Program-made: the position numbers and the translations under genes
Notes under the pieces: model-generated
What the model was told of the DNA's origin: nothing
Database searches by the model: none
Seen by the model: only the letters and a program-made list of their open reading frames with translations
Source: Rhodosorus marinus CCMP1338
Lineage: Eukaryota > Plantae > Rhodophyta
Reading direction: 5' to 3'
Length of the DNA: 64,000 bases
NCBI GenBank assembly: GCA_029953675.1
Contig: JAMWBK010000002.1
Coordinates: 186,001 to 250,000 of the forward strand
Shown: piece by piece, positions 41-36,064 of the stretch
How the letters are laid out: every line of letters begins with the position of its first letter
How positions within the stretch are numbered: the first letter of the stretch is position 1

Positions 41-1339
41 ATGAGGGTTCTGCCCGTAGTGGGAATGGTGCTCGGCTTGCTCGCAGGTTTGGCCTGTGGC
101 AGCGGTGTTTCTTTGGACGGGGATGCGCTGTATTCGATGAGATCATCAGCAACAGACTTAAGGAAGTGCTCTTTCTTCACGAATCAGTTTAACAAAGTCG
201 ATCTCGGTAATGGAAAGCAGAAATGCTATTGGCTCCGTGATTCCGGGGGTAGCATGGATCTTGTCGGTACAGTATGTAACGAGCTCGTCGAGCAATACGG
301 AAAGCTGTGTGTCAAGTTCCGGTTCAGCGCCCGTGTCGAATGGGAGTTAATGACGACTTTCGCGGGAATAAGAGGCGACTGCAACAAGCCAGGCACCTAT
401 CCATTCCAGGAGAAGAAAAAAGGGCCTAGGAAGACGATGAACCTGACAGTCTGTCTGGACGAGTTCAAGGTTCCTAAGGGTGACGACCGTGAAGGCTGCT
501 GCAACGAAGACATTTGCATGTTCATAAAAGCTAAGGTCCGCAAAGTTGGAAGAACTGCCATCAAGAACGCTTACCCGGAGGAGGATGTGGAAAGGTGTGC
601 AATCAGGTCGGATACTGATTTCGTTTCCTGCCGACGAAAGCTCAAATGCAGAAATGTTGCAACCCCGATCCCGACACCGATACCGACCCCGATCCCGACA
701 CCGGACCCGGTATGCCAGGATTACGCAGACGCCTTCGACTCAGTTTTCCTGAGCAATGAGGAGCAGTGCTACAATCTGGTTATTACTCAGACTGGACCAA
801 CGGCTGCAGTAGTCTGTATTACAGCGACAGAGACGAACGGCCAGACGTGTCTGAGGTATTCGTTCATGGCCGAAACCGGCTTTACTCTCAACACGGTCCG
901 CGCTGGGGCGTCCGCCAACTGTGACAATCTGGGAGAGGACCCCATCCAGGTAGAAGAGGCAGCTGGAGACCCAGGTATGTGGGTCGTGAACGTCTGCCTA
1001 GACGAGTTCACAGCGCCTCCTGGGGAGGATGGAGAGGGATGCTGCAACGGGCCAATCTGTGTTATTACGCAGGCTAACGTCACTGAAACGGGCAGCACAG
1101 TCAATGTCAACGTTCCGGCCTCCCCCTCTACCAATGGGACTGATCAATGCCTTGTTCGAACCCCGAGTTTGTTCGTTGGGTGCCCTGTTGAATTGAATTG
1201 CGAAGATGTGGAGGAGACTTCAACGCCGATCCCCGGAACACCGCTGCCAGGAAATGTAATACCTAACGGTACCCGGTTGGTGCGGGATCCAAGCATTGAG
1301 ATGGAGCCGATGGCTACGGAAATGGCAATGCCCGAATAA
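41..1339 (+). CDS. Secreted Cys-rich protein, paralog 1 (signal peptide - 12-Cys domain - short (PIPT)n linker - 12-Cys domain), 432 aa
   Basis: First ATG at 41 gives the hydrophobic signal peptide [20 protein letters not shown]. Two internal repeats share C..Y/F..F..V.L...CY.L...VC...C..F.F.A...AG....C...VCLDEF..P.G....GCCN..IC. Clear paralog at 10752. Confidence 0.88.
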   Translation: MRVLPVVGMVLGLLAGLACGSGVSLDGDALYSMRSSATDLRKCSFFTNQFNKVDLGNGKQKCYWLRDSGGSMDLVGTVCNELVEQYGKLCVKFRFSARVEWELMTTFAGIRGDCNKPGTYPFQEKKKGPRKTMNLTVCLDEFKVPKGDDREGCCNEDICMFIKAKVRKVGRTAIKNAYPEEDVERCAIRSDTDFVSCRRKLKCRNVATPIPTPIPTPIPTPDPVCQDYADAFDSVFLSNEEQCYNLVITQTGPTAAVVCITATETNGQTCLRYSFMAETGFTLNTVRAGASANCDNLGEDPIQVEEAAGDPGMWVVNVCLDEFTAPPGEDGEGCCNGPICVITQANVTETGSTVNVNVPASPSTNGTDQCLVRTPSLFVGCPVELNCEDVEETSTPIPGTPLPGNVIPNGTRLVRDPSIEMEPMATEMAMPE

Positions 1340-2394
1340 GAAGGGCAGGGAGAAGGTGGGGTGATGAATTGGAAATTGATGGATTTTAGTACTCTAATCC
1401 TGTTCACGTTTAAGATAGATATCGAGTCACGTCGACATCGTAAAGCATTGAGTCAATCCGCAGCTTCTTTTTAGTTCTGAGGTCGAACTTGCCCTCTTGC
1501 GCGTTTTCCGTCGCCTGAAATACAACGTCGAGACGTAACCGGAACGCCAGACTCGCCAGCAGCTGACCTTGATTGTTCGCTTCCACCAGATTGAATGGTT
1601 GGAACACCTCGCACTCACCCAAGTAGCAATGAAAGAAGTGCGGTCCGCGGCACTAGGCAATCAACCCTATCTGTACCTGGAGCGAATCTGTTTCCAACTT
1701 TTAGACTTAACTCGAACGCATTTTCGACGGTTACCCAGTAAAGCTTACGGTTACGAACTTGCGTGGGGTGTCAGGCATGCAGGCGCGTGCCCTCCTGTCC
1801 GCCGTGACCAGCTTGCGGTTACCTTGAGACGGCCGATTTGAACGATTCAGGAGAGGAATATCCCCTCCTTGGTGGGCACCCAGAAGGGGCTCTTTCGTAG
1901 GACTCTGTGATCGGGAAGGCGCACGTCCTCTTTGGCCAGATGATCTATTCGCCGAGATTCGTTATGCAAGACTTCCTAGGGGTGCATGTATAGCCAAATC
2001 TTCAAAGAAATCCATCAACCAGCCAATAGCTTCAGTAGAAAATCACTATAGAGGGCTTCAGGGATTTCATAGACGAGAGCGGGGCGACAAAATGCCAATG
2101 TCTGCGATGCGGGGCGGAACTCATTGCTACCAAACTACTGAAGCTACTGGTCATGTGACTCGAAGAACCAGTCCAGTCGGCTTGCTCCGAGAGTAAGCCC
2201 CCCAGGGGCTAAGGAAAACGTACGGTACAAAGAACTCGCCTCGAGAATAAAGGCGGTTGAACTCCGCCACTGGGCTAACAGAAAAAGACACTGAAACGCG
2301 ACCAACCCAATTGTCGATCCCCAAAGTACTCAAGCTACCAGAGGACACGAGAAAACTCCCTTCGGAATGCGATTGTTCTACTCCAAGTCCTTGC

Positions 2395-3020
2395 CACCTT
2401 AACCGCAATCTTCATCCTATCGTACGGCAAGCCGGTCTTGAAATTGAACGTGAGAAGTCCCCGCCTGTCGCAGACTACCAGAATGCTGAACGCCCCGTGG
2501 CCGACCTCGTGGTCACCTGTGACGACAGCAGCCGTACGACGTACGTTGATCTTGCCGTTCCTAATCCTCTGGTTAGTGCTATTTGCCGGCTACGGGAGAG
2601 CGCCGTGGATTTGCCGCTCCCAATATGAGACGTCGCAAAGAGTTGAAATAAGGGAGGGTCTTGTCTTCCCTAGGCATCCGTGCTTCGGCTCTAGCTCATC
2701 GACCTGGTACCTCTGGTCATTGAGTGCTTTGCCTTTAAGGATTCCGTTGGTTCTCGTTGGCTTCGGGAATTGTTCCGCGAACGCCCTGACCGTCTGTCCT
2801 CGTTGTTTTCCCTTTCAAGTTTCTTGCTGTGGCGTGTGAACGCTGCTTCGATGATGGAGGCGCGGGATCTTCGCCGCGCTTAGTCTTTTTTTCCCCACGG
2901 GGTAAGTTTCTTGCTGCTGCGCTGCTTTGATGTCGGAGGCGCGGGATCTTCGCCGCGCTTAGTCGCTTTTTCCCCTCGTTTTTTTTTTCCTTCAGCCTCG
3001 GGTTAAATAAATTCATTCAT
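2395..3020 (+). mobile_element. CRE-clade non-LTR retrotransposon family B, degenerate 3' fragment (endonuclease + 3' UTR, duplicated 3' end)
   Basis: Translates to PIVRQAGLEIE..VADLVVTCDD..YVDLAVPNP (RLE motif). The 3' end ...cttcgccgcgcttagtc occurs twice (~2860-2900 and ~2935-2975). It ends in an attcattc tail like the other B copies. Confidence 0.8.
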
Positions 3021-3068
3021 CAATCTTCAACCAATGCTTGCCAGCCTGTCGAGTCCAGAAGTAATTTA

Positions 3069-4682
3069 TGAGAACCTCCCTTGACAGCTGTGTAATCCGT
3101 CTATGTTTTAGTGTCAGGCACCTACTTTTAGTGTCAGACGTCAATGTTTAAGTATCCACCAGTTTCTACTTTACTGTCAGGTATGTTTTAGTTTACAGTA
3201 GCCAAGACCATATAAGGCCTAGCTTTTCTAGATCTTGAGACCTAGAATTGAGTAAAAGACAAGTTGGTCCGAAGAGTTCCAACAAAGTGGCCTCATCGCC
3301 TAAAAGGCGAAAGGAGTATTAAGGGAAGGAAAGGGAGAGAACCAGGAGCCGACTTCACAATGGCAACATTTGCGATTCCTCAGCGCGAACCATACGGCGG
3401 GCGACGGGACTTTGCAAAGGTTCAAACGTTTTTGGCGGCGCTCCAAGGTTATTTACAGTTCCTCGACGTTGACGACGCAGGGCGCCAGACGGTCCGGTAC
3501 GCGGGTTTCTTCCTCAAAGACCATGGTTTGCCAACGACCTTGCACGCTTCATCGACTACCTCGATGAACTCTTCATGCAGCTCGGAGAGCACATCAACGA
3601 TTCCGAAAAGCTCGGAATACTCAAGGCGGGCTTAACCAGGCGGGAACGTGATTTCGTGTATTACAGCCGCCCCCAAAGCTAAATTGAGGCCAAGCAGACT
3701 GGACTCAGCATATCCGGGGCGCCCGCGGTTCCTGAAACGACAATGCCGCAGAAAACCGTACAATCCGAACCTGCAACTCACGCACCTCCTTCAATACAAC
3801 CGCCACGACCGCACACGCGAAGTATGGGGCCGCTGAAACCTCTCATATGCTACAGGTGCCAAGAGGAGGGGCACGTCAAGAAGGACTGCTCTCAGCGAGT
3901 GGCCTATCTTCTGGCAGAGGTGGAGAGACTACCTCGCATTCAGGAAAACTGAGGGACTCCGGACGAGGGATGCCGTCCGTGAGTCAGGCTCGCAGCATCC
4001 CACCATGCGTTGCGCTGGAGCGGAAAGACACCGGACTCCTCGCGACAAGTCACGAAACACGCGGAGGAAAAGATCGCGGAGGAGCTTACCGACAAATGTA
4101 AGATGGGGTTCAGAACCCTCCGTGAAGGATCTGAAGGAGAAAAAGCGTGCACCGACGAAGGCGAACCGGGTTCGATGCCACCCTACAAAAGGATTCTGAC
4201 AATGAAGCGAAGGCAGGTACCGACGAAGGCGAACCAGGGTTCGGTAATGCCCTTCCCAAATAATCTATCAAAATGAAAGAAACCACCGACGACAGCGAAC
4301 CGGGGTTCGGTAGTCCGAAAAGATTTTCCCGAGATGACCGAGGTGTTCCGAGACAATTTTTACCAGACAACAGGGACAAACATGACCGACTACCACCGGA
4401 TAAAGAGACTTCGATCCGCTGCGCTACTTTCTTGAGTCTGTGCCCAAACTTGGCGGGAGGAATTTGAGAACCTCCCCTGACAGCTGTATAATCCGTCTAT
4501 GTTTTAGTGTCTGGCACCTACTTTTAGTGCATACGTCAATGTTTAAGTATCCACCAGTTTCTACTTTACTGTCAGGTAGGTTTTAGTTTAACGTCAGGCT
4601 ATGCTAGTAAAGTCCAGTTTAGTCCACTTTAACGTAACCAAGACTATATACGGCCTAGCTTTGCTAGATCTTGAGACCTAAA
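3069..4682 (+). mobile_element. Ty3/gypsy-like LTR element carrying only a decayed gag (no pol seen)
   Basis: Direct repeats at 3069-3284 (tgagaac...ccaaca) and 4465-4682. PBS-like aagTGGCCTC at 3285; purine tract ggcgggagga just before the 3' LTR. Gag-like MATFAIPQREPYGGRRD..VQTFL..LQGYL from 3359 and CCHC knuckle CYRCQEEGHVKKDC at ~3848-3890, frameshifted. Confidence 0.75.
4595..4627 (+). mobile_element. 33-bp 3'-terminal insertion of CRE family A inside the 3' LTR
   Basis: caggctatgctagtaaagtccagt matches the 3' end of the element at 31043-31063 (minus strand). It is flanked by tttaacgt at 4587-4594 and 4628-4635, and is absent from sister LTRs at 3069 and 4683. Confidence 0.85.
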
Positions 4683-4901
4683 TGTTAGAACTTGCCCTGA
4701 CAGCTGTGTAATCTGTGTAAGACACTCCCTACTTTAGTGTAAGATCCCTACTTTAGTGTAAGACGCTAGTGTGCTAGTATTTCTACTTTACTGTCAGGCA
4801 CGTCTTAGTTTACAGTAACCAAGACTATATAAGACCTAGCATTGCTAGATCTTGAGACCTAGAATGGAGTAAAGGACAAGTTGGTTAGAAGAGTTCTAAC
4901 A
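4683..4901 (+). mobile_element. LTR of a related subfamily abutting/truncating the previous LTR
   Basis: Terminal inverted repeat TGTTAGAAC...GTTCTAACA; body homologous to the 3069-3284 LTR (tttactgtcagg, ctagatcttgagacctagaat). Confidence 0.8.
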
Positions 4902-5423
4902 GAACAGCTGTCTCATGGACAGCTGTCTCAACAACTTTGTCCCAGATGGGACAGACGCAAGTGGGACACCCGCGGCCACTGTCGTCGCGCCGGGACACGG
5001 GGCATCGGCAAAAGCAGTGAGCGTGGAAGTCAGCTCCGCGAGGCGGTTGGCTTCAGCAGCAGCAGCAACAGCACCAGCAATTTGGACAACTAAGGCGTCC
5101 GCAGTAGCCTTGGTGCAACCTGGCAGTTTGGCGAGTGTGCCGAATCTCCTGAGTCGTAGCTCCACTGACAGCGGGGAGGCAGTTGACGAAACCATCTGAC
5201 GCGGAGATTCAGAGGGACGCCGGGGAAGAGTGTGCTCAGGTGTAGAATGGTTGAGTGCTCACAATAGACCGCCATGCATTGGCAGACGTTGATTACTTAG
5301 GCTCAAGTGGTGGGCGGGCTTCCGGGACAGGGAAACAGTAAAAGAAGGAACCGAAGTTCGGAGAAATACGACGGAGGTCAAGTATTTCCAACATGGTCTC
5401 ATCGCTCGGTGCGATTTAGAGAA

Positions 5424-5470
5424 ACCTTTTCACGGTTTGCGTAGCGCTTTAGGCTATGCTAATAAAGCTC
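5424..5470 (+). mobile_element. CRE family A 3' tail fragment
   Basis: ccttttcacggtttgcgtagcgctttaggctatgctaataaag resembles the family A 3' UTR (ttcacgccttgcgtagcgcttcaggctatgcta). Confidence 0.7.
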
Positions 5471-5479
5471 TACTCCTTT

Positions 5480-6560
5480 GCACGTCCCCTCAAGGGGGGG
5501 AGCGGACTTCCTGTGCTGGGCCAGCCCTCAGGTGGGGGCCTGGAGCTGTCCCCCACCCGAGGGCTAGGGTTACGTAATTAGTGTTGCGCTGCATTAGGCA
5601 GTTGCCGAGTAAAGTTAACAGTTACACCCCCGCCGCGCGCGCACACCCCCCCGACGCGTGGTGGCCCTCAGGGGGGCCCGTCGTACGTCTCGGTTTTACG
5701 GAAGGGTACCACAGCCGCCCGTACGGCGGCTATGCTAAAAGTTTTGCTCTCTCGAGAGCAGCAGGGCGGACCTGATGCTCTAATTTGCAATTCCTTTGTG
5801 TACGCAGCGTTCGACCCCAGACTACACGGGGCAAGGTCCCATCCATGCGTGATTTCCGCAATACTTTTGCGGAGTCCTTGGGCTGTTGCCGAGACGACTT
5901 CCTACTGCCAAGCCTACCGAGCAATGGCCTGAGAGTGCCCGTTGGTTGCGGTCTCATCCCCAGGTCGTTCTGCACTTTGACTTTGACCGTTTTTCGGGCA
6001 CTTTCCTGTCTCCCGGAGAAACAGCAGGACTCTCTCAGCAGGAAACCAGCGTGAAAGCCGCAGCCATCCATTGGCTACGCCTTCACCGCATTGAGCGTAT
6101 ACTTTTGGAGCGTTTCGCTTCGGGGCCACGTCACCTGCGTGCAGCCGTCTCTACCTTTTTCGACCGGGAGAGGCGCCTTGTGCTGAGCGCGAGTAACACA
6201 TCGGAGTTACAGAGGTTGGGGGTAATAGAGGGCTCTGCTACCAACACCACTTCCAGTGATAGTAGTGAGGAAGGGGAGCCGAATGAGGGCATGTCGGTGG
6301 AGAACGCCCCTACTACTTTTTCGAAGCCCGAGGGAGCTATCCCGCGAGCTTCGCGGAGTGGGCGGTTGACCACTCTGGTGAGGTTCGGCGGAAAACGTGC
6401 GAGGACCGACTCCCCAGGTTCTAAGGGGTAGAAGCACGATTAGCTCCCCGGGTACGGCTGCGACCTCGCAGCCGATGGATTTGCAGTCTTATGTCATGAA
6501 GGAGGGCGGAGACTGGGGCATTTGGCGTACGCGTTTACTAAGTTGGCTCTGGGGTTACGT
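5480..6560 (+). mobile_element. Probable 5' region (structured UTR + decayed N-terminal ORF) of CRE family A
   Basis: 6400-6550 is homologous to 14380-14530, which continues into the family A RT. GC-rich hairpins at 5480-5730. Confidence 0.6.
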
Positions 6561-6849
6561 TATCCCTACCATCCTGAGGGAATGCGCAAAGGAAACGTTG
6601 CACCACCAATATGAAACCGCACCGAGAGAATAATCGACCAAACCCAACCCAAATAGGAAAGGCCCCGCAACACACCCACCCGTAAGACTGAAGTAGTTGC
6701 AAATGCAAACGACGCCCCGCGGAAAACCGAGGGGAAGGCGTACCAGAGGAAGCGCTTCCCGTAAACGAACACGCTCGCGACCGAAAAAGAAACAAAACCC
6801 CAATCCTCGACAACAACTCCTCACAGACTCCTCCAGGCCGGACTTTTAG

Positions 6850-7463
6850 CCGTACTCTCAGCATACCGTCGTTCCTTCACGCGGCGAATAGCCGAAACCG
6901 CTGCTCCCGGCCGGCGGGCGGCAGCCGTGAGATGGGCGCTTGCCACCGGGCATGTAGTCGTGAGGTCAACATATGCTGAGCGTCTGGCGGCTGCATCGGA
7001 GACGAGGAGATCTGGGTTACAGCGGGGCGGTGCCGTGTCCGAGACCGATCTGGGTAGTTCCGATTCCACCTCAACCGTATACCCTACCCGAGTCAAACCT
7101 TCGCTGAGAATGTACTTGAAGCGAGTGTGACGCCTCGTACGAAGACCTCTCAACAGTCCGCGTGAACCTAAGAAGTGGTAACCACAAGCATCGATCCGAC
7201 TCTCACATCCCTGACAGAAAGACGGCCGATTAGAGTGCCACGGAGCTTCTGGCACACCCAGATAGATCCGTGCAGCAGAGCGGAACTGAAAGGCATCGAG
7301 ACGGTGACCCAGTGACGAAGGCAGCGTGGTTAACCACAAGTGCGACAGGTTGCCTCCCATGCCGCGGAGGCGAGCGGCGGTGGTAGGCGGTCTGAGGGGA
7401 GAGTTGAGCAAAATTGCGTGCGCGGCACTGTGTTGGCCCCAGGTGAGGCTATGTTGAATCACT
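6850..7463 (-). mobile_element. CRE family A internal fragment (CCHC knuckle + RLE)
   Basis: IQHSLTWGQHSAAH...CQGCESRIDACGYHFLG..RHTRFKYILSE..PDLLVSD..YVDLTTTCP..KERRYAES; highly similar to the C-terminus of ORF 31091-33919. Confidence 0.9.
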
Positions 7464-7830
7464 AACATAGCCTGATGCGTTACGCGAGACGTAAAAGGAA
7501 ACTAGGGACTAGGAAGAAGAGCATGTAAGCCCAGGCGACGGTGGCGCGCCTCGGCGAGCATTTTACTAGAATACCGCCAGAGTGCGATACTTCAACGGCG
7601 GAGCACCAGGATGTTCGGTAAAACACTTACGTAGCCACTCGAAGCTTGAATTTTCCAGATGCCCAAAGGTTTCCCACAATGAAAGGCTGGAACCTGTGTG
7701 GCCGGGGGTCCTCTTCCAAGAGAAGATTGCCCATGCTCTCAGAGTACCGTCGTTCCTTCACGCGGCGAAGTACAGAACCTCCTGCGGAGAGCGGCACAAG
7801 GGAGATATGTACCGGACACGGGGCAAGTGC
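7464..7830 (-). mobile_element. CRE family A 3' fragment with UTR
   Basis: KERRYSESM..HRFQPFIV.. followed by the family A 3' UTR ending caggctatgttagt. Confidence 0.85.
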
Positions 7831-8104
7831 CAGTTTCAAACGACACTACGCAATATATGCCTATCAAGAACACCGGCTACCCATGATGAACTTATTTCAG
7901 GTCTCCACTCTAGATGAGGTTTCAATCTTCAAATCCAATGTGCTCCCTCCCCATTTGAGGACCGTTCGACCCCCGGGTTTTGACAAGAGTTATCAAGTCA
8001 GTTGTCTCCGACTCCCACTAACGATGAATCCTCAACAAATCCATTCAAATATATGGTGTAGTTCTTTTTCCCCTCGGGCTGTTTTTTGCAGTCTCCGATC
8101 ATCT

Positions 8105-8462
8105 CTAGTCGTTATCTCCCGACTCGGGCCGTGGATCTGCCGCCGCCAGCATGAGACGCCGCAAAGAGATCAAATACGCGGGGGCTTTGTCTTCCCCTGG
8201 TGTTCGTGCTTCGGCACTAGCACATCGCTTGGTACCCCTGATCATTGAGTGCTTTGGGTTCATGGACTCTGTTGGTTCTCGCTGGCTTCGGGAGTTGTTC
8301 CGCGAACGCCCTGACCGTCTTCAATCGTTGTTTACCCGCTTAAGTTTCCTGCTGTGGCGCATGAATGCCGCTTTGATGTTGGAGGCGCGAGTACTTCGCC
8401 GCGCTTAGTCTTTTTTTCCCCTCGGGGTTTTTTTTTTCAGCCTCCGATTAAACCATTCGTTC
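8105..8462 (+). mobile_element. CRE family B 5'-truncated copy
   Basis: MRRRKEIKYA..LVPLIIECFGFMDSVGSRWL..LWRMNAALMLEARVLRRA*, T-rich UTR, tail aaaccattcgttcg; near-identical to copies at 9491, 14080 and 25165. Confidence 0.9.
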
Positions 8463-8479
8463 GATCAAAGGAGGTGGTT

Positions 8480-8595
8480 TTAACTACAGCCTGAAGCACT
8501 TACGCAGGGCGTGAAATGGATTTAGGAACTAGGGAGAAAAAGCAAATGCAAACCCAGGCGGCGATGGCGCGCCTCGGCGACCATGCTGCTACGCA
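8480..8595 (-). mobile_element. CRE family A 3' end fragment
   Basis: Minus strand gaggcgcgccatcgccgcctgggtttgcat...ttcacgccctgcgtaagtgcttcaggctg matches the A C-terminus and UTR. Confidence 0.75.
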
Positions 8596-8949
8596 AATGT
8601 ATTCATTCAGTAGGAGGGGGATAAGCAAGGTAACTACATCAGGTAACACGACGTTGAACGATGTGTTTGTTTGGAGTTTAAAAAAGCCGAGGGGAAAAAA
8701 AAACAGCTTAGTGAAGATCGCGCGCCTTCGGCATGAAACCGTTCATTCATAGGCCACAGAAGGAAAACTAGACAGGTAAAGAACGAGGAGAGACGAACTG
8801 CTGAAGGCGAAAATCACGAGCTTCCAACATCAAAGCAGCGTTCGTACTCGACGTTGGGGTGCCAGGCCGGGGCAAACAACGGCATGTTTAGGCTGATCGC
8901 GATAGCTGGATATCTGCAGAGCAATTAACGGGGTAACTGTGGTGCATCG

Positions 8950-9220
8950 CATAATAGGGTCCGTTTGTTCAATCAGTTTGCATCTCATTACGCGTCCTTT
9001 TCTATTGGCCACGCGCTCCATGAGAGCGCACAGTAGGGATCCGTTTGCTAACGGTTTCGTTTTTATACGTTCCATCTCAATGTGCGGACCTTTCTATCGG
9101 CCTCCGTGCTCCTTGCCGTCAACGCATAATAGGATCCATTTGTTAACGTTTCGAGTTAATAAGCTCCAGTCCAATGTACGGACTTTCCTATCGGTCTCCC
9201 GTGCCGTGCTCCAAGTGAAC
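8950..9220. repeat. Degenerate ~80-95 bp repeat, three units
   Basis: Recurring motif pairs tagg(g)(a)tcc(g/a)tttg(t/c)t and cctttctat(t/c)gg..c.(g/t)gctcc. Confidence 0.55.
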
Positions 9221-9490
9221 AGCAAATTCATTCACTTAGGACGGCTCTATTCTTGCACTTTTGAGCATGATTTTCGTCTCAAAATGTTCGATATTTATGG
9301 AAAGCTCAGATCGATTACCACCCCTGGAATAAATTTTGCCATATTCAGGTTTTTCTCCATGATTTTTTTGGTTGAAAACCAAGTCAGTCAAGATCGTACA
9401 TGATTGACCAATAATTCAATCAACGATCAGCGGAGCGGTCATTAAAAACTAAGTGTCATCCGGATGTTGCGTGATTACCATTGGCTTGAA

Positions 9491-9741
9491 GCACTAGCAC
9501 ATCGCTTGGTACCCCTGATCATTGAGTGCTTTGGGTTCATGGACTCTGTTGGTTCTCGCTGGCTTCGGGAGTTGTTCCGCGAACGCCCTGACCGTCTTCA
9601 ATCGTTGTTTACCCGCTTAAGCTTCCTGCTGTGGCGCATGAATGCCGCTTTGATGTTGGAGGCGCGAGTACTTCGCCGCGCTTAGTCTTTTTTTCCCCTC
9701 GGGGTTTTTTTTTTTCAGCCTCCGATTAAACCATTCGTTCG
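9491..9741 (+). mobile_element. CRE family B 5'-truncated copy
   Basis: Near-identical to 8215-8462, including the tail. Confidence 0.9.
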
Positions 9742-9744
9742 AAT

Positions 9745-9839
9745 ACCATATACTGGGCTTTTACTGGGGTTTACTGGACTTTACATGAAGCGCTAGGCAA
9801 GGCGTGAAAAGGCCTTGCGTAGCGCTTCACCATACACTG
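9745..9839 (-). mobile_element. CRE family A micro-insertion with fold-back 5' end and 10/11 direct repeat
   Basis: Minus-strand tail gtaaagtcca-gtaaacccca-gtaaaagccca; hairpin 9786-9829; flanks accatatactg (9745-9755) and accatacactg (9829-9839). Confidence 0.7.
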
Positions 9840-10751: not shown

Positions 10752-12542
10752 ATGAGGGTTCTGTGTGTGACGGTAGTAGTGGTCGGCCTGCTAGCAGGTC
10801 TGGCCTGTGGCAGAGGCGTTTCCTTGAGCGAGGACGCGCTGTCTTTGAGGGGATCATATTCATCACATTCAAGGAAATGCTCTTACTATACGAGGAAGTT
10901 TGACGACGTCGAACTAGGTAATGGACATCCAAAATGCTATTCGCTCCGTAATGCTTGGGGTAAATACGAGTCTGTTGGTACCGTATGTACCACCCTGGTC
11001 GAAAAATACGGAAAAACGTGCGTCAAGTTCCAGTTCACCGCCAAGAGAGGATGGGAGTTTATGCAAGCTTACGCAGGGATACAGGGTGACTGCAGGAATC
11101 CAGGTTACAATCCGTACCAGGAGAAGAAGACGAACGGGCCTAAGACTAGGATGAACTTGTCTGTCTGTCTGGACGAGTTCAAGGTTCCTAAGGGTTACAA
11201 CCGTGAAGGTTGCTGCAACAGAGACATATGCATATACATGAAAGTTAAGAGCCGCGAGGTTGGAAAATATTACACCAAGTGGGCTTACCCGCAAAAGGGC
11301 AAGGAACGATGTGCGATCAGGTCGAATACAGATTTCGTGTCCTGTACACGAAGACTCAAATGCAAAAATAATTCGACGCCAACTCCGGCGCCAACTCCGG
11401 CGCCAACCCCGACGCCAACTCCGGCGCCAACCCCGACGCCAACCCCGACGCCAACCCCGACGCCAACCCCGACGCCAACCCCGACGCCAACCCCGACGCC
11501 AACCCCGACGCCAACCCCGACGCCAACCCCGACGCCAACCCCGACGCCAACCCCGACGCCAACCCCGACGCCAACCCCGACGCCAACCCCGACGCCAACC
11601 CCGACGCCAACCCCGACGCCAACCCCGACGCCAACCCCGACGCCAACCCCGACGCCAACCCCGACGCCAACCCCGACGCCAACCCCGACGCCAACCCCGA
11701 CGCCAACCCCGACGCCAACCCCGACGCCAACCCCGACGCCAACCCCGACGCCAACCCCGACGCCAACCCCGACGCCAACCCCGACGCCAACCCCGACGCC
11801 AACCCCGACGCCAACCCCGACGCCAACCCCGACGCCAACCCCGACGCCAACCCCGACGCCAACCCCGACGCCAACCCCGACGCCAGGTCAGGCATGCAGT
11901 GCGTACACAGACCGCTTCGACGAAGTATTCGTGAAAAGTGAGGCGAACCAGGAGATATGCTACAATTTGGTTTTTACCCCCTCTCCTGGTTCGCCTCACT
12001 ACGACGACGAGACGGACGGGGAAGGACAAAGGGCTGGACAAGTCTGTATTACAGTGAACGAAATGGATGGCAGGACGTGTGTGAAGTACTCGTTCTTGGC
12101 TGAAACCGGCTGGTCTTTCAAGTTGGTTAAGGCTGGGGCGCAGGCCGATTGTGAGGCGCCCATGCCATTGAACCCCTATCAGGCTCAATGGACAGCAGCT
12201 GAGGAATTTGATCGCGAGGCCTTGTCCGTTTGTCTCGACGAATTCACATCGCCTCCAGGCGGCAATGGACGTGGATGCTGCAACAGTAATATCTGTGTCC
12301 TTTCAGCGGCTGTGGTGAGCCAGTCTGGTATCACGGAGAATACCGGCGTCTGGGCCTATCCTGTTTCGGAATTCGGGGATAAATGCGGAGTTCGACAGCC
12401 GAGCGGGAACCATGGATGCGAGGCTTATTTGCATTGCGTAGACGCGGACGCGACCCAAACGCCGGGGTTACTATCACATCCTAGGATTCTTAGACGTCCA
12501 ACCACGGACCCAGTGGCTACGGCGATGCCAATGCCGGAATAA
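10752..12542 (+). CDS. Secreted Cys-rich protein, paralog 2, with a 170-aa (Pro-Thr)n rod between two 12-Cys domains, 596 aa
   Basis: ATG 10752 gives signal peptide [20 protein letters not shown]. Same two-domain layout and C-terminus (ATAMPMPE) as paralog 1 (ATEMAMPE). Confidence 0.9.
11376..11885 (+). repeat. Coding 12-bp tandem repeat (acgccaaccccg)n = (TP)n, ~42 units
   Basis: 510 bp; units are essentially identical after the first few APTP variants. Confidence 0.97.
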
Positions 12543-12700
12543 GAAGGTCAGGAGGAAACTGGAACGACGAAATGAGAAATAGACGGATTCTAGTACTCTA
12601 ATCCTATTCACGTTCAATATAGACAAAAAATCATGTCGACATCGTAAAGCATTGAGTCAATACGCATCTTCTTTCCGTCCTTTTTTTATTCTGAGGGCGA

Positions 12701-12814
12701 ACTGGCCTTTGTGCTCGTTTGCTTGTAGTCCAGCATCGAGACGTAACCCAACTCCCCACTGGCCTTTGTGCTCGTTTGCTTGTAGTCCAGCATCGACTCG
12801 TAACCCAACTCCCC
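12701..12814. repeat. Two-copy 57-bp tandem duplication
   Basis: actggcctttgtgctcgtttgcttgtagtccagcatcga..cgtaacccaactcccc at 12701 and 12758. Confidence 0.9.
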
Positions 12815-12849
12815 CGCACTGAACGTCATTGCTCCGTTCCAGCAGTGGG

Positions 12850-13365
12850 TGACGAAAAAGTATTAAAAAAGCACTAAAATGTATAAGCACGTCAGCAAGC
12901 GGCTCGAGCATCTTAGCACATGCCATCTGAATGAACGTGATGATCAACTAAAACAAAATACTCGATGATCGGTGGAAGAAGCCGATAGGAATTGTCCTAT
13001 CGCGATTAGCCAATGCCGAATCGCGAAGCGTAGAGTCCAACATAGCCGCAGCGTACTGGGATTCCTTGAGTTGCCACCGCATTGAACGGAACGGAACGGT
13101 CATCATCCGTGCCGCACTCGCCACCGAACTGTAGCGCATCTGCGTCGACCAGACGCTGGCAGGTATCTGGTAGTCTGAGGATAAGGGATAGAAAGGTCGA
13201 TGTACTCACTCCGACGAGCACTCAGATCAGTGACCACTAGGTCCGCCACCCGTTGCGCCACTGGGGCGTCAGCCCCATCAGTAATTGACTTGCCACCGGC
13301 AGGGGGACCTCATACTCCACCTCTCGGTCGCAGCGCCTGAGAACGAAGACAGAGGAACAACAAGC
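12850..13365 (-). mobile_element. CRE-clade family C, decayed endonuclease/3' segment
   Basis: Minus-strand frames give VEYEVPLPV, VADLVVTDLSARRSEYIDLSI and MRWQLKESQYA (RLE motifs). Confidence 0.65.
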
Positions 13366-13399
13366 GGTTGAGCCGCGTATGGCGTCGAGTCTGGACCAG

Positions 13400-14030
13400 C
13401 GGACAAGATGTCAACAAATACCCACCAAATTCACCGCAAGGCACTGAGTCGCCGCACAGGTTACATCGCGAATCGCTGTCCGCAGGCCATGGCTGTTGGG
13501 GCGCTTCGAAAAGTGCACCATCTTACACCATCCGGAGGTTTTCCCGGAGCTGGACCAACAAACAAACCTCGCCAGCCTCGCCCGGATAGCGGAAGGGTTG
13601 TGCCTCCACGGCGTTCCTCTGGGTACACCGACATACGTCTCGCAGCAAACTCGACGACTGCTCCTGGAACATGAACGATTCATCGAAGGTATCCTACGTC
13701 TACCACCAGATGCCTTACCTCAACAGCTCCGTCCCCTCCGCTATTGTGCGAGCGGCCGCTCGACATATCTTCTTCGGGCTCTTGATGCTGCAGCTGGTGC
13801 CATCGTAGCGCGGGAGGTGGGCGCGTTCTCCACAGGTGCTCAGTCGTATTTGTGGGCCGCTGCATGACTATCCGCTCTTGTCAGCGGGCGATGCCAATTT
13901 GGTGCAGGCGCAGATTCAACTCCCTTGCCGCTGGGGTGGCTTGGGATTTTCCTCCCAGGCGCGCATCCAACCCGGTGCCGCCGTCTCGCAGATCTGCTGC
14001 CGTCTACGCTCCGACTGAAGCAACTACTAA
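13400..14030 (+). mobile_element. CRE-clade family C, decayed RT-thumb segment
   Basis: LHGVPLGTPTYV..LRYCASGRSTYLLR and QIQLPCRWGGLGFS are the post-RT motifs of CRE ORFs. Confidence 0.65.
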
Positions 14031-14079
14031 TGAGCACCGATGATACGTCTACGCTTCCCAGAACCATGACCCTGGTACG

Positions 14080-14286
14080 TTGTTCATGGACTCTGTTGGT
14101 TCTCGCTGGCTTCGGGAGTTGTTCCGCGAACGCCCTGACCGTCTTCAATCGTTGTTTACCCGCTTAAGTTTCCTGCTGTGGCGCATGAATGCCGCTTTGA
14201 TGTTGGAGGCGTGAGTACTTCGCCGCGCTTAGTCTTTTTTTCCCCTCGGGGTTTTTTTTTCAGCCTCCGATTAAACCATTCGTTCG
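14080..14286 (+). mobile_element. CRE family B 5'-truncated copy
   Basis: Near-identical to the B 3' end; tail aaaccattcgttcg. Confidence 0.9.
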
Positions 14287-14379
14287 GTATCTGCCGAGAT
14301 ACAGAAAATGCTCCGCCCTGTCTCGGAGAACTTGCCCGCAGATTGTCCGCCTTCCCTCACCCGCGCCGTCACATGGGAC

Positions 14380-16740
14380 GGACTCCTGTTCTAAGGGGGA
14401 GAAACACGATTAGCTTCCCGAGCACGGCTGCGAGGTCACAGCCAATGGACCTGCAGTCTTATGTCCTGAAGGAGGGCGGGACTGGGGCATCTGGCGCACG
14501 CGCCTGCGGAGTTGGCTCCGGCGATGGATTTCTTTGGGAGGAGGCTCCCTACCCCTCCGGGGAAGGATTCCGCCTCTTGTATTCCCTCGAGGAGAGCTCT
14601 CCATGGCTGGGACAATCCTGGATTTTATTTTCCAGAGTCTGGCGCGTAATCAACGGGACGTCGCTATGTGGGAATTTTTGGGGGTCATGCCGCGCCTGAT
14701 TCTGGCACCCACTCACACATCGGAGCGCAGATGGCGAGTCCGAGAACGACTGGCCATTCTCCTGAAGGGGGAATTTGAGGTGTTGCAGCAGAGCTACTTG
14801 GCGTCATCCGAGGCATCCGGCCGGAGGACTCGTGCCGGGACAGCCTCGCCTGGGACGACTCGAGTGCAGAAATTGGTGGCGGTTGGCGGCCTGAGCCGAG
14901 CGGCACGGGTCTTGGAGGGTCAGGTGCCTGTACTCCCCTACGACGAGAGCCTCGACCAGACTGTGTCGGCGTTGTTCCCCTCGTCCGACGTGGACTTGCC
15001 CCCCGAAGTCGAGACATTTTTAGACCGTCCAGAGTTGGCGAGGTTCCGCATCGACGTGACGCTCCCTGAGTCTAATCTGGAGGATTTGCTCCGGATCTCC
15101 CGGTGTGGACGCTGCCCTTGACCCTCTGGGCCACGAACGGAATTCCTGCAGGCCTTGAGCAGCCAGAGCGCACTGGTGAAGATCCTGAATCCACGAACGG
15201 AATTACTGCAGGCCTTGAGCAGGGTGCAGGGGGTGCGTCTGCCCCTTGGGACCATCTCCGACGGGCACAGCTTCACTTGCTTACGAAACCCGACCACAAG
15301 CCGGCACACCCGCGTCTCCGGCCGATCGGTGGTCGAGAGTCTACGGAAGCTCGCCGGGAGGTGGCTATTCCAGCGCCTACGCCAGCATGTCCCCGTTTTT
15401 ATGGCGCCTTGGCAGGTAGGGGTGGGATTTTCCGGGGGTTGCGAAATGATCACTCATGCGATCGAGCTCGAGCGAGCCAGTAGGCCGGATTGGGGCGTTT
15501 TGGTGGTTGACTTTCCGTAACGTTTCAACAGCGTCTCGCGGACGCAGTCTTTGGAGGTGATTCGAAGGGTATTCCCGGAGGCGTGGCCGTTCCTATCCGG
15601 CATTTACGGAGGGGAGCCTCCCTTACTTGACAACGTGGGGCTCTGTTTTTGAAGCACGTACGGGCGTTCAGCAGGGTGATCCTTGTGGGCCTGTACTTCA
15701 CGCATATGCCTTGCAGCTCGTGCTCCAGCGACTGGCGGCTGAGGTGCCGGAGCTTCGCATCTGTGCCTACCATGAAGACGTGACGTTGCTGGGCACCCCT
15801 GAGCACTTGGCTCGGGGATTGACCCAGATCGAAGCAATCGCACGTGGAGTAGGTCTAACCGTGGAACCCGAAAAATGCCGTTTTCTTGGCCCGCGTGAAG
15901 TTTCGAGGGGCTCCCCGCCACCTAGTCTCCGAGCCTTTGGTGAAGGTGCGGGGCTCGAGCACCATGGCGTTGGTTTGTGGAGTGACAACTTCGTCCAAGA
16001 CTCTTGCGAACGAGTTTTAGCACGCCATAAGCAGCTCACGACGCCATTGAGCGCCTACCGGACGGCATGCTCCAATCGGCTTGCCTGCTCTCCCGCTTTT
16101 GTGCCGGCCCGAACTGAATTACTGGCAGCGAAATCTTCCACCGCACTGGGGCTCGTGGATAGCAGCCAAGGCGAACGAGGCGACGCTGAAGAACTGGGGA
16201 ACGCTCTTGGATGAGCCCCTGGATGTGGAAGCGGCTCCTGGCAGGGACCTAATTCGTGGCCAGATTGCCCTACCTTTACGGTTAGGGGGATTTGGAGTTT
16301 CCGACCGTGGACTCGTATGCTCGGCTGCGGCGGTCACCTCCTGGGATACCGCGCTTCGCACCTTGGTGAGTTCTCGGATGCGAAGTGCTTGCTTTTGGCG
16401 ATAGCACAGACTAGCGAAGACCGCGTGACCCTTCCGGCACCGCTTTTGAGTATCTACGATGCTCTGCAACAGGCGTTCAGTAAGTGCAACGCCGTGCCGG
16501 ACGAGAGCCGATCCAGATTTCGCTCCTGGAAGGAGCTGTTACGGGGACGAACTGAGGCGCTCGAGGACTCTCCCATCGACGGAGGACTCGCCGACGAGGG
16601 GGAAGCTAGCCCCGGGTCACCGGTTGCCGATTACCCGGGTCTGAGCCGATTGTGGAGCTCGCCCCCACTGATGTGATTCAACATAGCCTCACCTGGGGCC
16701 AACACAGGCCGCTCACGCAATCTTGCTCAACTCTCACCCC
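14380..16740 (+). pseudogene. Large frameshifted CRE family A copy (N-terminal region, RT, thumb; 3' end missing)
   Basis: Fragments MPRLILAP, ESLRKLAGRW, WQVGVGFSGGCE, GVQQGDPCGP, AYHEDVTL, IALPLRLGGFG and IQHSLTWG, colinear with ORF 31091-33919. Confidence 0.9.
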
Positions 16741-16990
16741 GCGGCCAACAATTTAAAATTAGACGAATAGACCGGGGGCGAGTTTTCTCTCCCTGCTCCC
16801 AACCCTGCTCCCAACAAACGGAAATGGCGCGGGATTGATTGACTGAACTTGTGTACGCCGTTACAGATGTTTTAATCTGATGTAGCTCGGCAGTATCAGC
16901 TTGTTGATGATTAGACCCATTGGGGTACATTCGCCTCTCCGGTTTCATTCGTTTACGTTAGAATATAGGTCTCTCGAACTCCATGGCTTC

Positions 16991-19900
16991 CTACAGGGCA
17001 AGGGCTCCACAGACGTTCTCAATAACCTGTGGAACGACATCAGGAAAATCTGATGCAAATTCTGTTGTTATCGTGGGTCCCAGGGATTCGCTGGACATAT
17101 CGTTGAGAATCTGAACATTCGACTCAGTTGCTATTGCATCCTCTGCTGAAATAGTCACAATAGAGACTCCTCGGTTTTTCAGATCCCTCGCCAAACCTCT
17201 TAAGAGCGGAGGATTCTGCACTCCTGTTGATGGCGGACCATCCGTGATAAAAACAAAGATTTGGACAGCGTCTGCATTCCCACTTGACAAGATGGCATCG
17301 CATCCCTTCAAAGCCGTAGAATAGTTTGTCAACTGCCTGCTGGTCGGAAGCCGGTAACTGGATAAGACGTCCTTCACCGACTCGTTTGATAGCAATGGTT
17401 CAACTTGAAGTCGCTTAGTTCCGTAGAAGACAAGTCCAAATCGGCTCTCAGATCCATCTACGACCATACGGTTCAGCTGGTTAACAATGCTTGAAACCAT
17501 ATCCAGCTCTCCGATTAAGGCATCTGATGATCCTCCTGCATTGGGGTCCCAGATCGACCCAGAAACATCGATTGCGATGCAGACTTCAAGTCTGTCAAGT
17601 TGGCATTCGATGACTGGTAAAGGTGTCGGCTCCTCTTCTGGCTCAAATGCTTCGCAGACGCGACTAACAACAGGATATGAAAGTACTGCGAGGTCGTTAC
17701 ATTCTGGCACGTAGTCATAGTTGCCCGAGCTTGCCCAATTGTGGAGTACTCGGAATAATCGCGTTTGCCGTCCGCAGCCGACGGAGAAGATCTTCGTTCC
17801 TCTTGCTTTTGCATCGGAAGCCGCTGCTTCGTTGTCCTCTTCAGACGAACCAGATTCGGATATAATCACAATGGCCTTGCTGGAACCTGTTCCTCCATCA
17901 ATGACGCTCTGGCACTGATTCAAGGCGGTAGCGAGGTTGGGATGTCCTCCTAGTTGAGGATTGGAGAGCAGTAGATCGTTTCTTGCAGCCTGTATGGATG
18001 ATCTCCGCTCGGTTATTGTTTGAATAGTACCAGTAGAAGTCACCGCAGAGAATGAAACGCGAGTGTTGCCGGCCTGGATGATCCGAGCGAGTTCGCTGAA
18101 GAGCATCTCTTGCGCAGCGAAACCTCCTGAAGATTGAGCTTCGCCGGTATCCAGAACAAAGCAGACATCCAGGTCGCTCAGTTCACAGACTTGCTCAGGT
18201 AGGAGTTCTGAAGGCGTTTCTGTTGGAGTTTCCATAGCAGTCTCAGCTGCAGTTTCTGGTACAGTCTCAACTGCCGTCACAGCCACTGTCTCCATGGATG
18301 TCACAGTTGCGATCTCCATAGCGGTCACGGTTGCGGTCTCCATAGCGGTCACAGTTGCGGTCTCCATAGCGGTCACAGCTGTGGTCTCCATAGCGGTCAC
18401 AGTTGTGGTCTCCATAGGAGTCTCGGCAGCCGTCTCGACCACGGTCTCGGCCAAAGTTTCGGCTTCAGTCTCAACTTCCGTCTCCGCAACAGTCTCGGTT
18501 ACTGTTTCAGCTGCAGGTCCACTCTCTATCACAGTTTGAACGGCAGTTTCAGCCGCAGTTTCCGTCGCTGTTTCAGCCGCAGTTTCAGTCACTGTTTCGT
18601 TTGCAATTCCAGTTTCCGCTGCAGTTTCAGCAACTGTCGCCGCTGCTGTCTCAGGAACTGTCTCTGCCAAGGTTCCGGCTTCTGTCTCAATTTCTGTTTC
18701 AGTCCAAATCTCAGCTGCAGTTCCGGTCTCAGTTATAGCGACCGTCTCAACTGCTGTGGGAGCTGCTGTGAGAGCTACTGTCGGAGCCACTGTCTCAGCG
18801 ACGGTCTCAGCGACGGTCTCAGCGACGGTCTCAGCGACGGTTTCAGCGACGGTCTCAATGACGGTTTCAGCCTCCGTGTCAGCCTCCGTTTCAGCTGCTG
18901 TCTCAGACGCTGTCTGAGACGTTGTCTCAATCTCCGTTTCAGCCACCGTCTCAGCCGTTGTCTCGACTACTGTCTCAACCGCTGTTTCAGCTAATGTCTC
19001 AACTGATGTCGGAGCTGCCGTTGGAGCTATTGTCGGAAATACTGTCTCAGAGGCGGTCTCAGCCTCCGTTTCAGTTGCTGTCTCAACAAGCGTTTCAGTT
19101 GCTGTCTCCGCCACGGTCTCCGCCACGGTCTCCGCCACGGTCTCCGTCACGATCTCAGCCGCTGTCTCGGACGCAGTCTCAGCTAATGTCTCAGCTAATG
19201 TCTCAGACACAGTTTCAGTTAATGTCTCAACTGCCGTTTCCCCTATGGTCTCAGCCACGGTCTCAGCCGCTGTCTCGGACGCAGTCTCAATTAATGTCTC
19301 GGTCGCAGTCTTAGCTAATGTCTCAGACGCAGTCTCAGACGCAGTCTCAGCTAATGTCTCAACAGCCGTTTCAGCTATTGTCTCAGCTGTTGTCGGGTCT
19401 ACTGTTGGAGCTACAGTTAGAGCTACTGACGGAGCTACTGTCTCAGACACGGTCTCAGCGACGGTCTCGGTCACCGCTTCAGATGCAGTTTCAGCCACCG
19501 TTCCAGCCGCCGTTCCATCGACCGTTTCAGCCTCCGTCGCAGCCACTGTTTCAGCCTCCGTTTCATCCGCAGTTTCAGCCTCCGTTTCAGCCTCCGTTTC
19601 AGCCTCCGTTTCAGCCTCCGTTTCAGCCTCCGTTTCATCCTCCGTTTCAGCCTCCGTTTCATCCTCCGTTTCAGCCTCCGTTTCAGCCTCCGTTTCAGCC
19701 TCCGTTTCAGCCCCCGTTTCTGCCCCCGTTTCTGCCCCCGTTTCTGCCCCCGTTTCTGCCTCCGTTTCAGCCTCCGTTTCAGCCTCCGTTTCTGCCTCCG
19801 TTTCAGCCTCCGTTTCAGCCTCCGTTTCAGCCTCCGTTTCAGCCTCCGTTTCTGCCTCCGTTTCAGCCTCCGTTTCTGCCTCCGTTTCTGCCTCCGTTTC

Positions 19901-21481
19901 TGCCTCCGTTTCTGCCTCCGTTTCTGCCTCCGTTTCTGCCTCCGTTTCTGCCTCCGTTTCTGCCTCCGTTTCCGCCGCAGTTTCTGCCGCAGTTTCCGCC
20001 TCCGTTTCCGCCGCAGTTTCTGCCGCAGTTTCCGCCTCCGTTTCTGCCTCCGTTTCAGCCGCAGTTTCAACCGCCGTCTCTGGTACTGTCGGGGATAAAT
20101 TTTCACATAATAACTCCAACTCACAAGTCGTAGGACTTCCTCGTACTCCGGCAGAGCAGGATGTGCCGCTCAAACTGGGAAAGAAATTGAGGTCCCTCAC
20201 ACCGCTCCTGTCCCTAAGAGAGGCAGTTGCTTTCATGAGAACACAAATGTCATCGTTGCAGCATCCGATTCCAGTTGGTCCAAATGCTGATTTAAATTCG
20301 TCGAGGCATACGACGAATGATTCATCGATCACAGGCGGAATGTTCTCAAGAACCCGCTGGTATGGACTGCTTGCGTTCAGCTCATTACAGTTATTACTGG
20401 CTCCAACGCTTATGCTTGTGAACATCCACCGCCTCGAAGCAGCGAAATTATACTCAAGACATCTTTTACCGTCTCGATCCACCAGTGATATGCACACTCT
20501 GCCGGCCCTGATCGGATTGTCGGTATCAGAAAGCATTTTGTAGCACCTTCGGTTGCCCTTAGGAGATACACTAGAGCTAGAGAACTGCGAAACGTGAGTC
20601 AAGCACGTCGGGTTGTCTGCAGAGGAAGGCATCGGTGTCCTGTCTTCAGTATTCATTGCCGTTTCCATCGGCGCTCCCGAGAAACTTGGACCGGGATCTG
20701 GGGTAGCACTCGCCTGCACTGGCTCAGTCTCTAAGCCCGCCGACGCATCTGGTGTCCCCTCGTCTTCCTCCGGCATAGTTTCCGTTGGGATGGGATTCGA
20801 CGTGAATTCGGTCTCCTCAGGAGATGGCAGATGCGTAAGCATATTCAATTCCGTCGCGGTCGTCGTCATCCTCCCCTCGCAGAATAGGTGGCTCTTGCAC
20901 CTCGAAAACTCGGAGATTTCATCAGGAATACAATCCAGGGACCCGAACGCCGGAACCGCCCTGCTGATCTCCGTTTCGCCCGTTCGTCTCACTCTGGCGT
21001 AGGGCACCACACAGATATCCTCGTTGCAGCATCCATTTCCATCAGCCCCTGGCAAAGCTTCAAACTCATCCAAAGCCACCGATGCGCTCCGAGAAGTCCA
21101 CGGTCCACCTACCTTCACGTCTTGGAATCCAGACTCTTCCGAATCACATCTATCATACACCCCACCCCTTATTTCAACGAACTGCCATCCAGGTTCCGCT
21201 ATGTAGTCAAAGCTCACTACCATCGGACCATGAGGATTCTTAATCTGATTACAGATCACACCGACCTTATCGTTGAAGCCTTCGACTAGCAGATCATAAC
21301 ACAGCTCATTAGCTACGTTTCCGATTGATATGCTCTCAAACTGAGTCGTGTAGCTCGAACACGTCCGTTTGTCATCCGATTGTCTCCAGGTGATCGCGTC
21401 CAAGGTTGAATCGGGGCGAGCAATCCCGCAGCAGGCCATGCACGTAAGGAGTAGGACAGGAAGAAGAGTAGATTTGTCCAT
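16991..21481 (-). CDS. Large secreted protein: two Cys-rich domains, ~650-aa Glu/Thr/Ala rod, two vWA domains, 1496 aa
   Basis: ATG 21481 gives signal peptide [21 protein letters not shown]. Two LDEF..GCCN.DIC domains. vWA1 [11 protein letters not shown] (degenerate MIDAS); vWA2 [25 protein letters not shown] (intact DxSxS..T..D). No C-terminal TM segment. Confidence 0.9.
18240..20080 (-). repeat. Coding low-complexity rod (AET/ETEA/TAVET/TAMET units; 12-bp core repeat at ~19560-20080)
   Basis: (gcctccgtttca/t)n on the + strand; graded divergence away from the core. Confidence 0.92.
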
Positions 21482-35854: not shown

Positions 35855-36064
35855 CAGGGGGAGGGGGGGGAATCCAGTTTTGTGTGGTACCCTCTTGAGA
35901 ACTTTACACTTCTTATCACTTTTTGCACTTTATTGTACTTGTTTGCACATTATTGCACTTTTTACACTTCTTACCAGTGGGAGTTGTTTTTTACCCCTCA
36001 TGAGGAGGTTGGGCTGTCCGGTAAATTCTTGACGAGGATAGACTATTGAAGAACAGTATACAAA

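Follow-up and report, generated by a model that had tools for sequence, protein, structure and literature searches.

What do three neighbouring genes of the red alga Rhodosorus marinus make, when each encodes two copies of a cysteine-rich domain that belongs to no described family? The genes, here called A, B and C, lie in a 64-kb stretch of genomic DNA (the window: positions 186001-250000 of contig JAMWBK010000002.1, assembly GCA_029953675.1), where a sequence-only reading had picked out six copies of the domain in three genes within 21.5 kb and had proposed a red-algal extracellular matrix or adhesion family. We find that the domain family is real, undescribed and narrow in range, and that, judging from sequence features, its proteins are probably lineage-restricted building blocks of the extracellular matrix or of adhesion; the design itself, a knob-rod-knob matrix glycoprotein, is already known. 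The protein part of red-algal cell coverings is scarcely known, above all in unicellular makers of commercially interesting sulfated polysaccharides, and the family supplies named candidate matrix proteins for Rhodosorus.

A repeated cysteine-rich domain and its family

Three uninterrupted, intronless open reading frames (ORFs) carry exactly six copies of a ∼165-amino acid domain, referred to below as the knob (d1 and d2 denote the first and second knob of a gene). A six-frame scan of the window for the motif LDEF..GCCN..IC found sites at 455, 998, 11169 and 12234 on the forward strand and at 21073 and 20305 on the reverse strand, with no further sites; a six-frame scan with a hidden Markov model (HMM) recovered the identical six full-length domains and zero extra, confirming the count of the sequence-only reading. 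The copies are 28-62% identical among themselves, and even the most distant pair, A_d1 and C_d2 (29% identity), aligns at a BLASTP E-value of 4e-22, so that the repeat lies far beyond chance. Same-position knobs of genes A and B (62% identity between A_d1 and B_d1, 47% between A_d2 and B_d2) are closer to one another than d1 is to d2 (33%), indicating that the two-knob layout is older than the A/B gene duplication.

Hallmarks of the family, drawn from alignments of the six window copies and of 26 domains, are a length of ∼165 amino acids, 12 aligned cysteines, a V(C)LDEF-x8-10-GCCNxxIC core and a place directly after the signal peptide. The 12 cysteines originally counted per domain are present in five of the window copies, but C_d1 has only 10, Cys4 and Cys6 being replaced. 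The LDEF..GCCN..IC part of the signature first described is common to all six copies, but its beginning needs correction: the cysteine is the variable residue, giving V(C/A)LDEF rather than (V/A)CLDEF, and the ‘..P.G’ element occurs in four of the six. In the 26-sequence alignment eight cysteine columns do not vary at all, and another three are kept in 90% or more of the sequences. Where cysteines are missing they are lost jointly: Cys4 and Cys6 in C_d1 and in the relatives P0021 and P0027, Cys5 and Cys9 in P0020 and P0017 (the latter read from its sequence), and Cys2 and Cys3 in the first domain of a paralogue upstream of the window. This pairwise loss suggests three of six disulfides (C2-C3, C4-C6 and C5-C9) and, being typical of such domains, points to an oxidised extracellular domain.

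AlphaFold2, supplied with the 26-sequence alignment, models the domain (A_d1) as an all-beta structure of about 10 strands (predicted local distance difference test, pLDDT, 94.8; predicted template modelling score, pTM, 0.89). The knob is thus predicted to be a ∼165-amino acid all-beta domain with up to six disulfides.

Signal peptides and the lack of a membrane anchor, both claimed for all three genes, were borne out, in that each protein has a single Kyte-Doolittle peak of at least 1.4, at residues 1-3, and no later transmembrane or glycosylphosphatidylinositol-like segment. The two knobs of genes A and B, and of the transcript-derived protein P0002, form a charge dipole, with a basic d1 (isoelectric point, pI, 9.2-9.6; net charge +11 to +19) and an acidic d2 (pI 4.0-4.3; net charge -16 to -27).

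When 1.84 billion representative proteins were searched exhaustively with HMMER (E≤1e-3), only 29 clusters were returned. Among the 20 clusters whose sources were looked up, every named full-length member is from R. marinus (genome or MMETSP transcriptomes), the remainder are transcriptome or metagenome fragments, and there is no other red-algal proteome; the sources of the relatives include Logan runs SRR32518362 and SRR22824290, JGI 3300016877 and several MMETSP transcripts. ‘Red-algal’, the range first proposed, is too broad for the family. Its presence in R. marinus transcriptomes indicates that the family is expressed. Contigs from viruses and from JGI metagenomes, scanned by pattern, yielded no relatives. 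A word-indexed protein search of the same collection yielded one relative with the six-domain profile, none with the 26-domain profile and none with a pherophorin-like query; since the exhaustive search recovers 29 clusters there, these negatives reflect a limit of the index for cysteine-rich, fast-evolving domains rather than absence.

At least nine family genes, on five contigs, are present in the R. marinus assembly. The clustering noted at the outset applies to the three genes of the window, but a fourth gene lies ∼85 kb upstream of the window on the same contig (a 919-amino acid ORF with three knobs and long (SPTP) rods), and at least five paralogues are spread over four other contigs. 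In almost all relatives the domain begins 35-50 residues from the N-terminus, right behind the signal peptide, and the partner modules are all extracellular or adhesive: VWA domains (P0008, P0009), RTX calcium-binding repeats (P0018, P0027), Cys-rich repeats (P0016), and Pro/Thr/Ser rods or Ser/Thr/Pro tails. Gene C itself matches the VWA family PF00092 in two stretches (65.9 bits against a gathering cut-off of 23.8; E = 6.8e-18), passing the Pfam threshold, and the metal ion-dependent adhesion site (MIDAS) of its second VWA domain can be read from the sequence as DVSGS, the T within NYSTAL, and TDG.

The RTX runs are a peculiarity of their own. Long stretches of RTX-type calcium-binding nonapeptides (HemolysinCabind, best E = 2.7e-54) are joined to the knob in P0018 (KAJ8903302.1), P0027 and P0022/P0044. 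Such repeats are known chiefly from proteins that bacteria secrete, and to see them in a eukaryotic alga is unusual.

Proposed role of the proteins

A signal peptide, a presumably oxidised cysteine-rich fold, glycoprotein-type rods and adhesive partners together lead us to propose that these are secreted matrix or adhesion proteins. The partner domains (VWA with its MIDAS, Pro/Thr rods, RTX in paralogues) fit the role suggested by the sequence-only reading, a role that we still infer. The Rhodosorus cell itself is surrounded by a mucilaginous sheath. Other Stylonematophyceae, the class to which Rhodosorus belongs, have been described with a mucilaginous envelope (PMC9031348).

As secreted matrix or adhesion proteins, the products would be directed into the secretory pathway by an N-terminal signal peptide that can be cleaved off. 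The knobs would be oxidised in the endoplasmic reticulum, the Thr/Pro- or Thr/Glu-rich spacers would be O-glycosylated, and the proteins would pass out of the cell into its mucilaginous sheath, where they might act as structural cross-linkers or adhesion molecules, with two binding knobs on a spacer of variable length; in gene C, a strongly acidic rod would carry at its distal end a VWA module for metal-dependent adhesion. Given a basic d1 and an acidic d2, electrostatic binding is the most likely mode: the basic knob would bind polyanions, for which the acidic knobs of neighbouring molecules, the gene C rod and sulfated or uronic polysaccharides are candidates, producing a network. Alternatively, the dipolar dumbbell might polymerise head to tail. 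The charge pattern suggests electrostatic cross-linking, and this mechanism is clearly less certain than the matrix or adhesion role.

Several points weigh against the proposal. The signal peptides were called from Kyte-Doolittle hydropathy and inspection; gene C and many of the paralogues with a single knob show no charge dipole; and the long (Thr-Pro) rod of gene B is without transcript support and is unmodelled in the public annotation. Moreover, a Foldseek search with the confident model found no PDB structure at E≤1e-3, only generic immunoglobulin-like sandwiches with a template modelling (TM) score of at most 0.35, and a first, lower-confidence model gave the same outcome against the PDB (TM up to 0.37). 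As no solved structure resembles the knob fold, no function can be transferred to it.

Sequence searches agree on the novelty of the domain. Pfam has no match for the six window copies at E≤10, nor for the 29 relatives at E≤0.01, and PDB sequence searches with both the six-domain and the 26-domain profile gave nothing meaningful. The domain, unrecognised when first noticed, thus stays so: neither the Pfam searches nor AlphaFold modelling followed by Foldseek against the PDB produced a significant match to a described family. The only significant fold match, found with the lower-confidence model alone, is A0A481Z1W0, an uncharacterised 559-amino acid protein of Pithovirus LCPAC001 whose own structure is predicted, not solved (BFVD, a collection of predicted viral structures; Foldseek E = 1.5e-5, probability 1.00; TM 0.52 normalised to the query; 178 columns; 12% sequence identity). 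As modelled, the knob is apparently a new beta-sandwich and a candidate for a Pfam family.

The same predicted fold raises a different explanation, which we consider unlikely: the knob could be a lectin-like carbohydrate-binding module, in which case specific sugar recognition, not charge or knob-knob contacts, would organise or anchor a sulfated exopolysaccharide. Its beta-sandwich would suit such a module, as would the long linkers, which are typical between the binding modules of carbohydrate-active proteins, and the conserved acidic loop VCLDEF..G..GCCN could house a calcium or sugar site; the top PDB match (4iyk, E = 7e-3, not significant) is a putative carbohydrate-binding protein. However, TM does not exceed 0.35 for any solved lectin or carbohydrate-binding module, the invariant columns are nearly all cysteine and glycine with no obvious conserved aromatic platform, and the pI of paralogous knobs spans 4.0 to 9.7, which argues against a single conserved ligand.

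Far less probable still is a role outside the matrix, in which the secreted proteins would serve defence against, or interaction with, other organisms, for example as Cys-rich antimicrobials, anti-grazer factors or proteins of bacterial adhesion. In keeping with such factors, the proteins are small, secreted and rich in cysteine, their multigene family is restricted to one lineage and diverges fast, the genes sit among retroelement fragments, and some paralogues have RTX repeats. Long glycoprotein-type rods and VWA modules, however, are typical of matrix proteins and not of toxins or antimicrobial peptides, and no similarity to a known toxin or antimicrobial family was found in Pfam or the PDB.

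The locus, its annotation and neighbouring genes

Features of genes A, B and C in the 64-kb window, with window positions (aa, amino acids)
Feature	Position	Strand	Description
Gene A	41..1339	+	432 aa; single ORF; signal peptide, knob d1, (IPTP) linker, knob d2, Met-rich C-terminal tail
Gene A signal peptide	41..100	+	putative; sole hydrophobic peak (Kyte-Doolittle KD19 = 2.09, residue 3); small residues at -3 and -1 by sequence inspection
A_d1, 12-Cys domain	164..655	+	basic: pI 9.2, net charge +11; AlphaFold pLDDT 94.8
Gene A short Pro/Thr linker	656..709	+	VATPIPTPIPTPIPTPDP; 18 aa
A_d2, 12-Cys domain	710..1207	+	acidic: pI 4.05, net charge -22
Gene A C-terminal tail	1208..1336	+	ends in ...IEMEPMATEMAMPE; motif common to gene B, P0002, P0003
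Gene B	10752..12542	+	596 aa; single ORF; signal peptide, knob d1, (Thr-Pro) rod, knob d2, tail
B_d1, 12-Cys domain	10875..11369	+	basic: pI 9.5, net charge +19
Gene B rod	11370..11891	+	174 aa; 49% Pro, 47% Thr
B_d2, 12-Cys domain	11892..12443	+	acidic: pI 4.3, net charge -16
Gene C	16991..21481	-	1496 aa; single ORF; signal peptide, knob d1, linker, knob d2, acidic rod, VWA, VWA
C_d1, 10-Cys variant	20873..21364	-	Cys4 and Cys6 both replaced (V, A)
C_d2, 12-Cys domain	20099..20608	-	found by motif, HMM scan and BLASTP
Gene C acidic rod	18197..20098	-	634 aa; Glu 27%, Thr 27%, Ala 23%; net charge -177
Gene C VWA domain 1	17657..18169 (approximate bounds)	-	Pfam PF00092; MIDAS degenerate: DTGEA for DxSxS, SES for TDG
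Gene C VWA domain 2	17081..17584	-	PF00092 E = 6.8e-18, best stretch residues 1300-1467; complete MIDAS DVSGS ... T ... TDG

The rods are encoded by tandem repeats, in gene B as a near-perfect 12-nucleotide array (11374-11885; 42.7 copies, 98% matches) and in gene C, where the protein consists of (ETEA)n and (AETV)n repeats, as 12/24-nucleotide arrays. Such repeats probably misled the gene caller. Gene B is represented in the public annotation by its last 159 amino acids only (P0005, window 12063-12542); the public model of gene C (1482 amino acids, window 16991-21439) starts at Met15, which cuts off the signal peptide; and the three-knob ORF of 919 amino acids upstream of the window (L003 9584-12343) is modelled as a spliced protein of 301 amino acids. 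For gene A, an exact look-up starting at the first or the second ATG of the ORF found no recorded product equal to it; along its whole length, gene A shares 57% identity with the transcript-derived R. marinus protein A0A7S3EDA1, which has an identical layout. Truncated or missed models of repeat-containing family genes are a practical problem of the public annotation.

A Met-rich C-terminal tail, E.EPMAT.M.MPE, is kept in genes A and B (window 1280-1336 and 12500-12539) and in the paralogues P0002 and P0003, and could serve in processing or sorting, or bind metal through its methionines.

Between the genes lie remnants of a retroelement. A 942-amino acid reverse-transcriptase ORF (31091-33919, reverse strand; Pfam RVT_1, 1.6e-15) has degraded copies at 5886-8248, 14178-16214 and 34882-36049, and such fragments separate genes A, B and C; these copies may have had a part in how the cluster was rearranged or spaced.

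Elsewhere in the window, a MATE transporter ORF (60537-62006) has on either side one of two paralogous ORFs in opposite orientation, 53927-54778 (forward, 283 amino acids) and 62287-63177 (reverse, 296 amino acids), which are 43% identical (E = 1e-68), begin with an N-terminal hydrophobic segment each and have no Pfam match. A phycobilisome linker domain (PF00427, 2.2e-29) is encoded at 28962-29858 (forward) by a nuclear gene whose product has a hydrophobic C-terminus, and a 757-amino acid ORF at 38741-41014 (reverse) has several hydrophobic segments and no Pfam match. The window also encodes a DHHC palmitoyltransferase; together with the phycobilisome linker gene and several reverse-transcriptase copies, this content fits a red alga.

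VWA proteins, diatom repeats and pherophorins

Like matrix and adhesion proteins of the VWA type (PF00092), gene C, P0008 and P0009 contain genuine VWA domains, and the MIDAS is intact in the second VWA domain of gene C. We know of no counterpart, among described VWA proteins, to the N-terminal 12-Cys knobs or to the 634-amino acid acidic rod.

Weak matches connect the knob to diatom multi-repeat proteins (e.g. Seminavis robusta CAB9521096) and to the metagenomic relatives P0019, P0023, P0026 and P0028; HMMER E-values reach 6e-13. When the knob is aligned to the diatom repeat with hhalign, the match shows real homology (95.3%, E = 2.3e-8) but covers only the 48 columns of the N-terminal third, C..L...VG.VC......F.A..GW.F, and does not extend to homology of the whole unit. 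Diatom proteins resemble the family in having extracellular, Cys-containing units of ∼165 amino acids with Ser/Thr/Pro linkers between them; their units differ in having FPYYWCNS and a C-terminal C.C, and in lacking VCLDEF...GCCN..IC. The diatom units, like the knob, have no Pfam model and no known function, and a connection to uncharacterised diatom surface proteins is possible. A bolder account would derive the knob fold of red algae and diatoms from a common source, e.g. by transfer via a red-algal endosymbiont, and would see the Rhodosorus proteins as self-assembling, glycosylated, dipolar dumbbells that polymerise head to tail into the sheath and were invented independently of pherophorins; we regard this combination as doubtful.

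Pherophorins of the volvocine algae are defined by a dumbbell layout of globule, Pro-rich rod and globule (PMC9818292), and this layout is present in gene A, with its 18-amino acid PT linker, and in gene B, with its 174-amino acid (TP) rod. Three paralogues (A0AAV8UM57, A0AAV8UNN6 and A0AAV8UUH2) are even named ‘Pherophorin domain-containing protein’ in UniProt. It might thus be argued that the knobs are highly diverged, possibly circularly permuted pherophorin domains (PF12499, DUF3707) and the genes true pherophorin homologues, although we consider this improbable. Among sister paralogues the UniProt names are ‘Uncharacterized protein’, ‘Secreted protein’ and ‘Calcium-binding protein’; such a mixture fits naming by the ProtNLM language model, now in use at UniProt (PMC11701636), rather than a domain match, and these entries may have been named in that way.

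Profile comparisons do not bear the label out. Four real Volvox domains (SSG185, PhG) were rebuilt from genomic sequence in the supplement of PMC9818292, some junctions being uncertain, and formed the pherophorin alignment for the profile tests together with one typed, pherophorin-like sequence; the latter, which matches PF12499 at 3e-39, is not real data and was replaced as main evidence. PF12499 detects the real Volvox SSG185/PhG domains at 1e-17 to 1e-28, yet it matches none of 35 family sequences (six window domains at E≤10, 29 relatives at E≤0.01), and hmmsearch --max gives -0.2 bits for the relationship. A colinear hhalign comparison of the 26-domain profile with the pherophorin alignment reaches a probability of 1.7%, confined to a 25-column C...CC motif, and the cysteine framework of pherophorins, FPxCxC ... 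CC ... CCP, is not colinear with the cysteine order of the knob. A weak signal for homology comes from hhalign against a tandem-duplicated pherophorin alignment, in which an 86-column permuted match (score 25.0, P = 0.0066) exceeds all 310 shuffles and a reversed control, with a probability of 5.7%.

Circular permutation was tried directly and rejected: after the family had been permuted, PF12499 matched none of 22 sequences at E≤10, and the alignment stayed at a 26-column C...CC motif with a probability of 1.2%.

The pherophorin layout is therefore present, but on these sequence comparisons membership in that family is not supported, and the early observation that a globule-rod-globule layout comes without sequence similarity to pherophorins withstood PF12499, hhalign and permutation tests alike. 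The ‘pherophorin’ label on three paralogues was not reproduced by any homology method tried; the analogy to pherophorins is itself not new. The best reading of the resemblance is convergence on a matrix design. Both the pherophorins of the Volvocales and the Rhodosorus family are secreted, have two Cys-rich globules, form a multigene family and vary greatly in rod length, and the presumed role common to both is that of an extracellular-matrix building block (PMC9818292). They differ in the rod, which is (Thr-Pro)n or acidic (Glu-Thr-Ala)n in Rhodosorus and Ser-(Hyp)n in pherophorins (Hyp, hydroxyproline), and in their combinations with VWA and RTX, noted only for the Rhodosorus family. With a red alga as one host and green algae as the other, the two families would make a case of a convergent ‘knob-rod-knob’ design.

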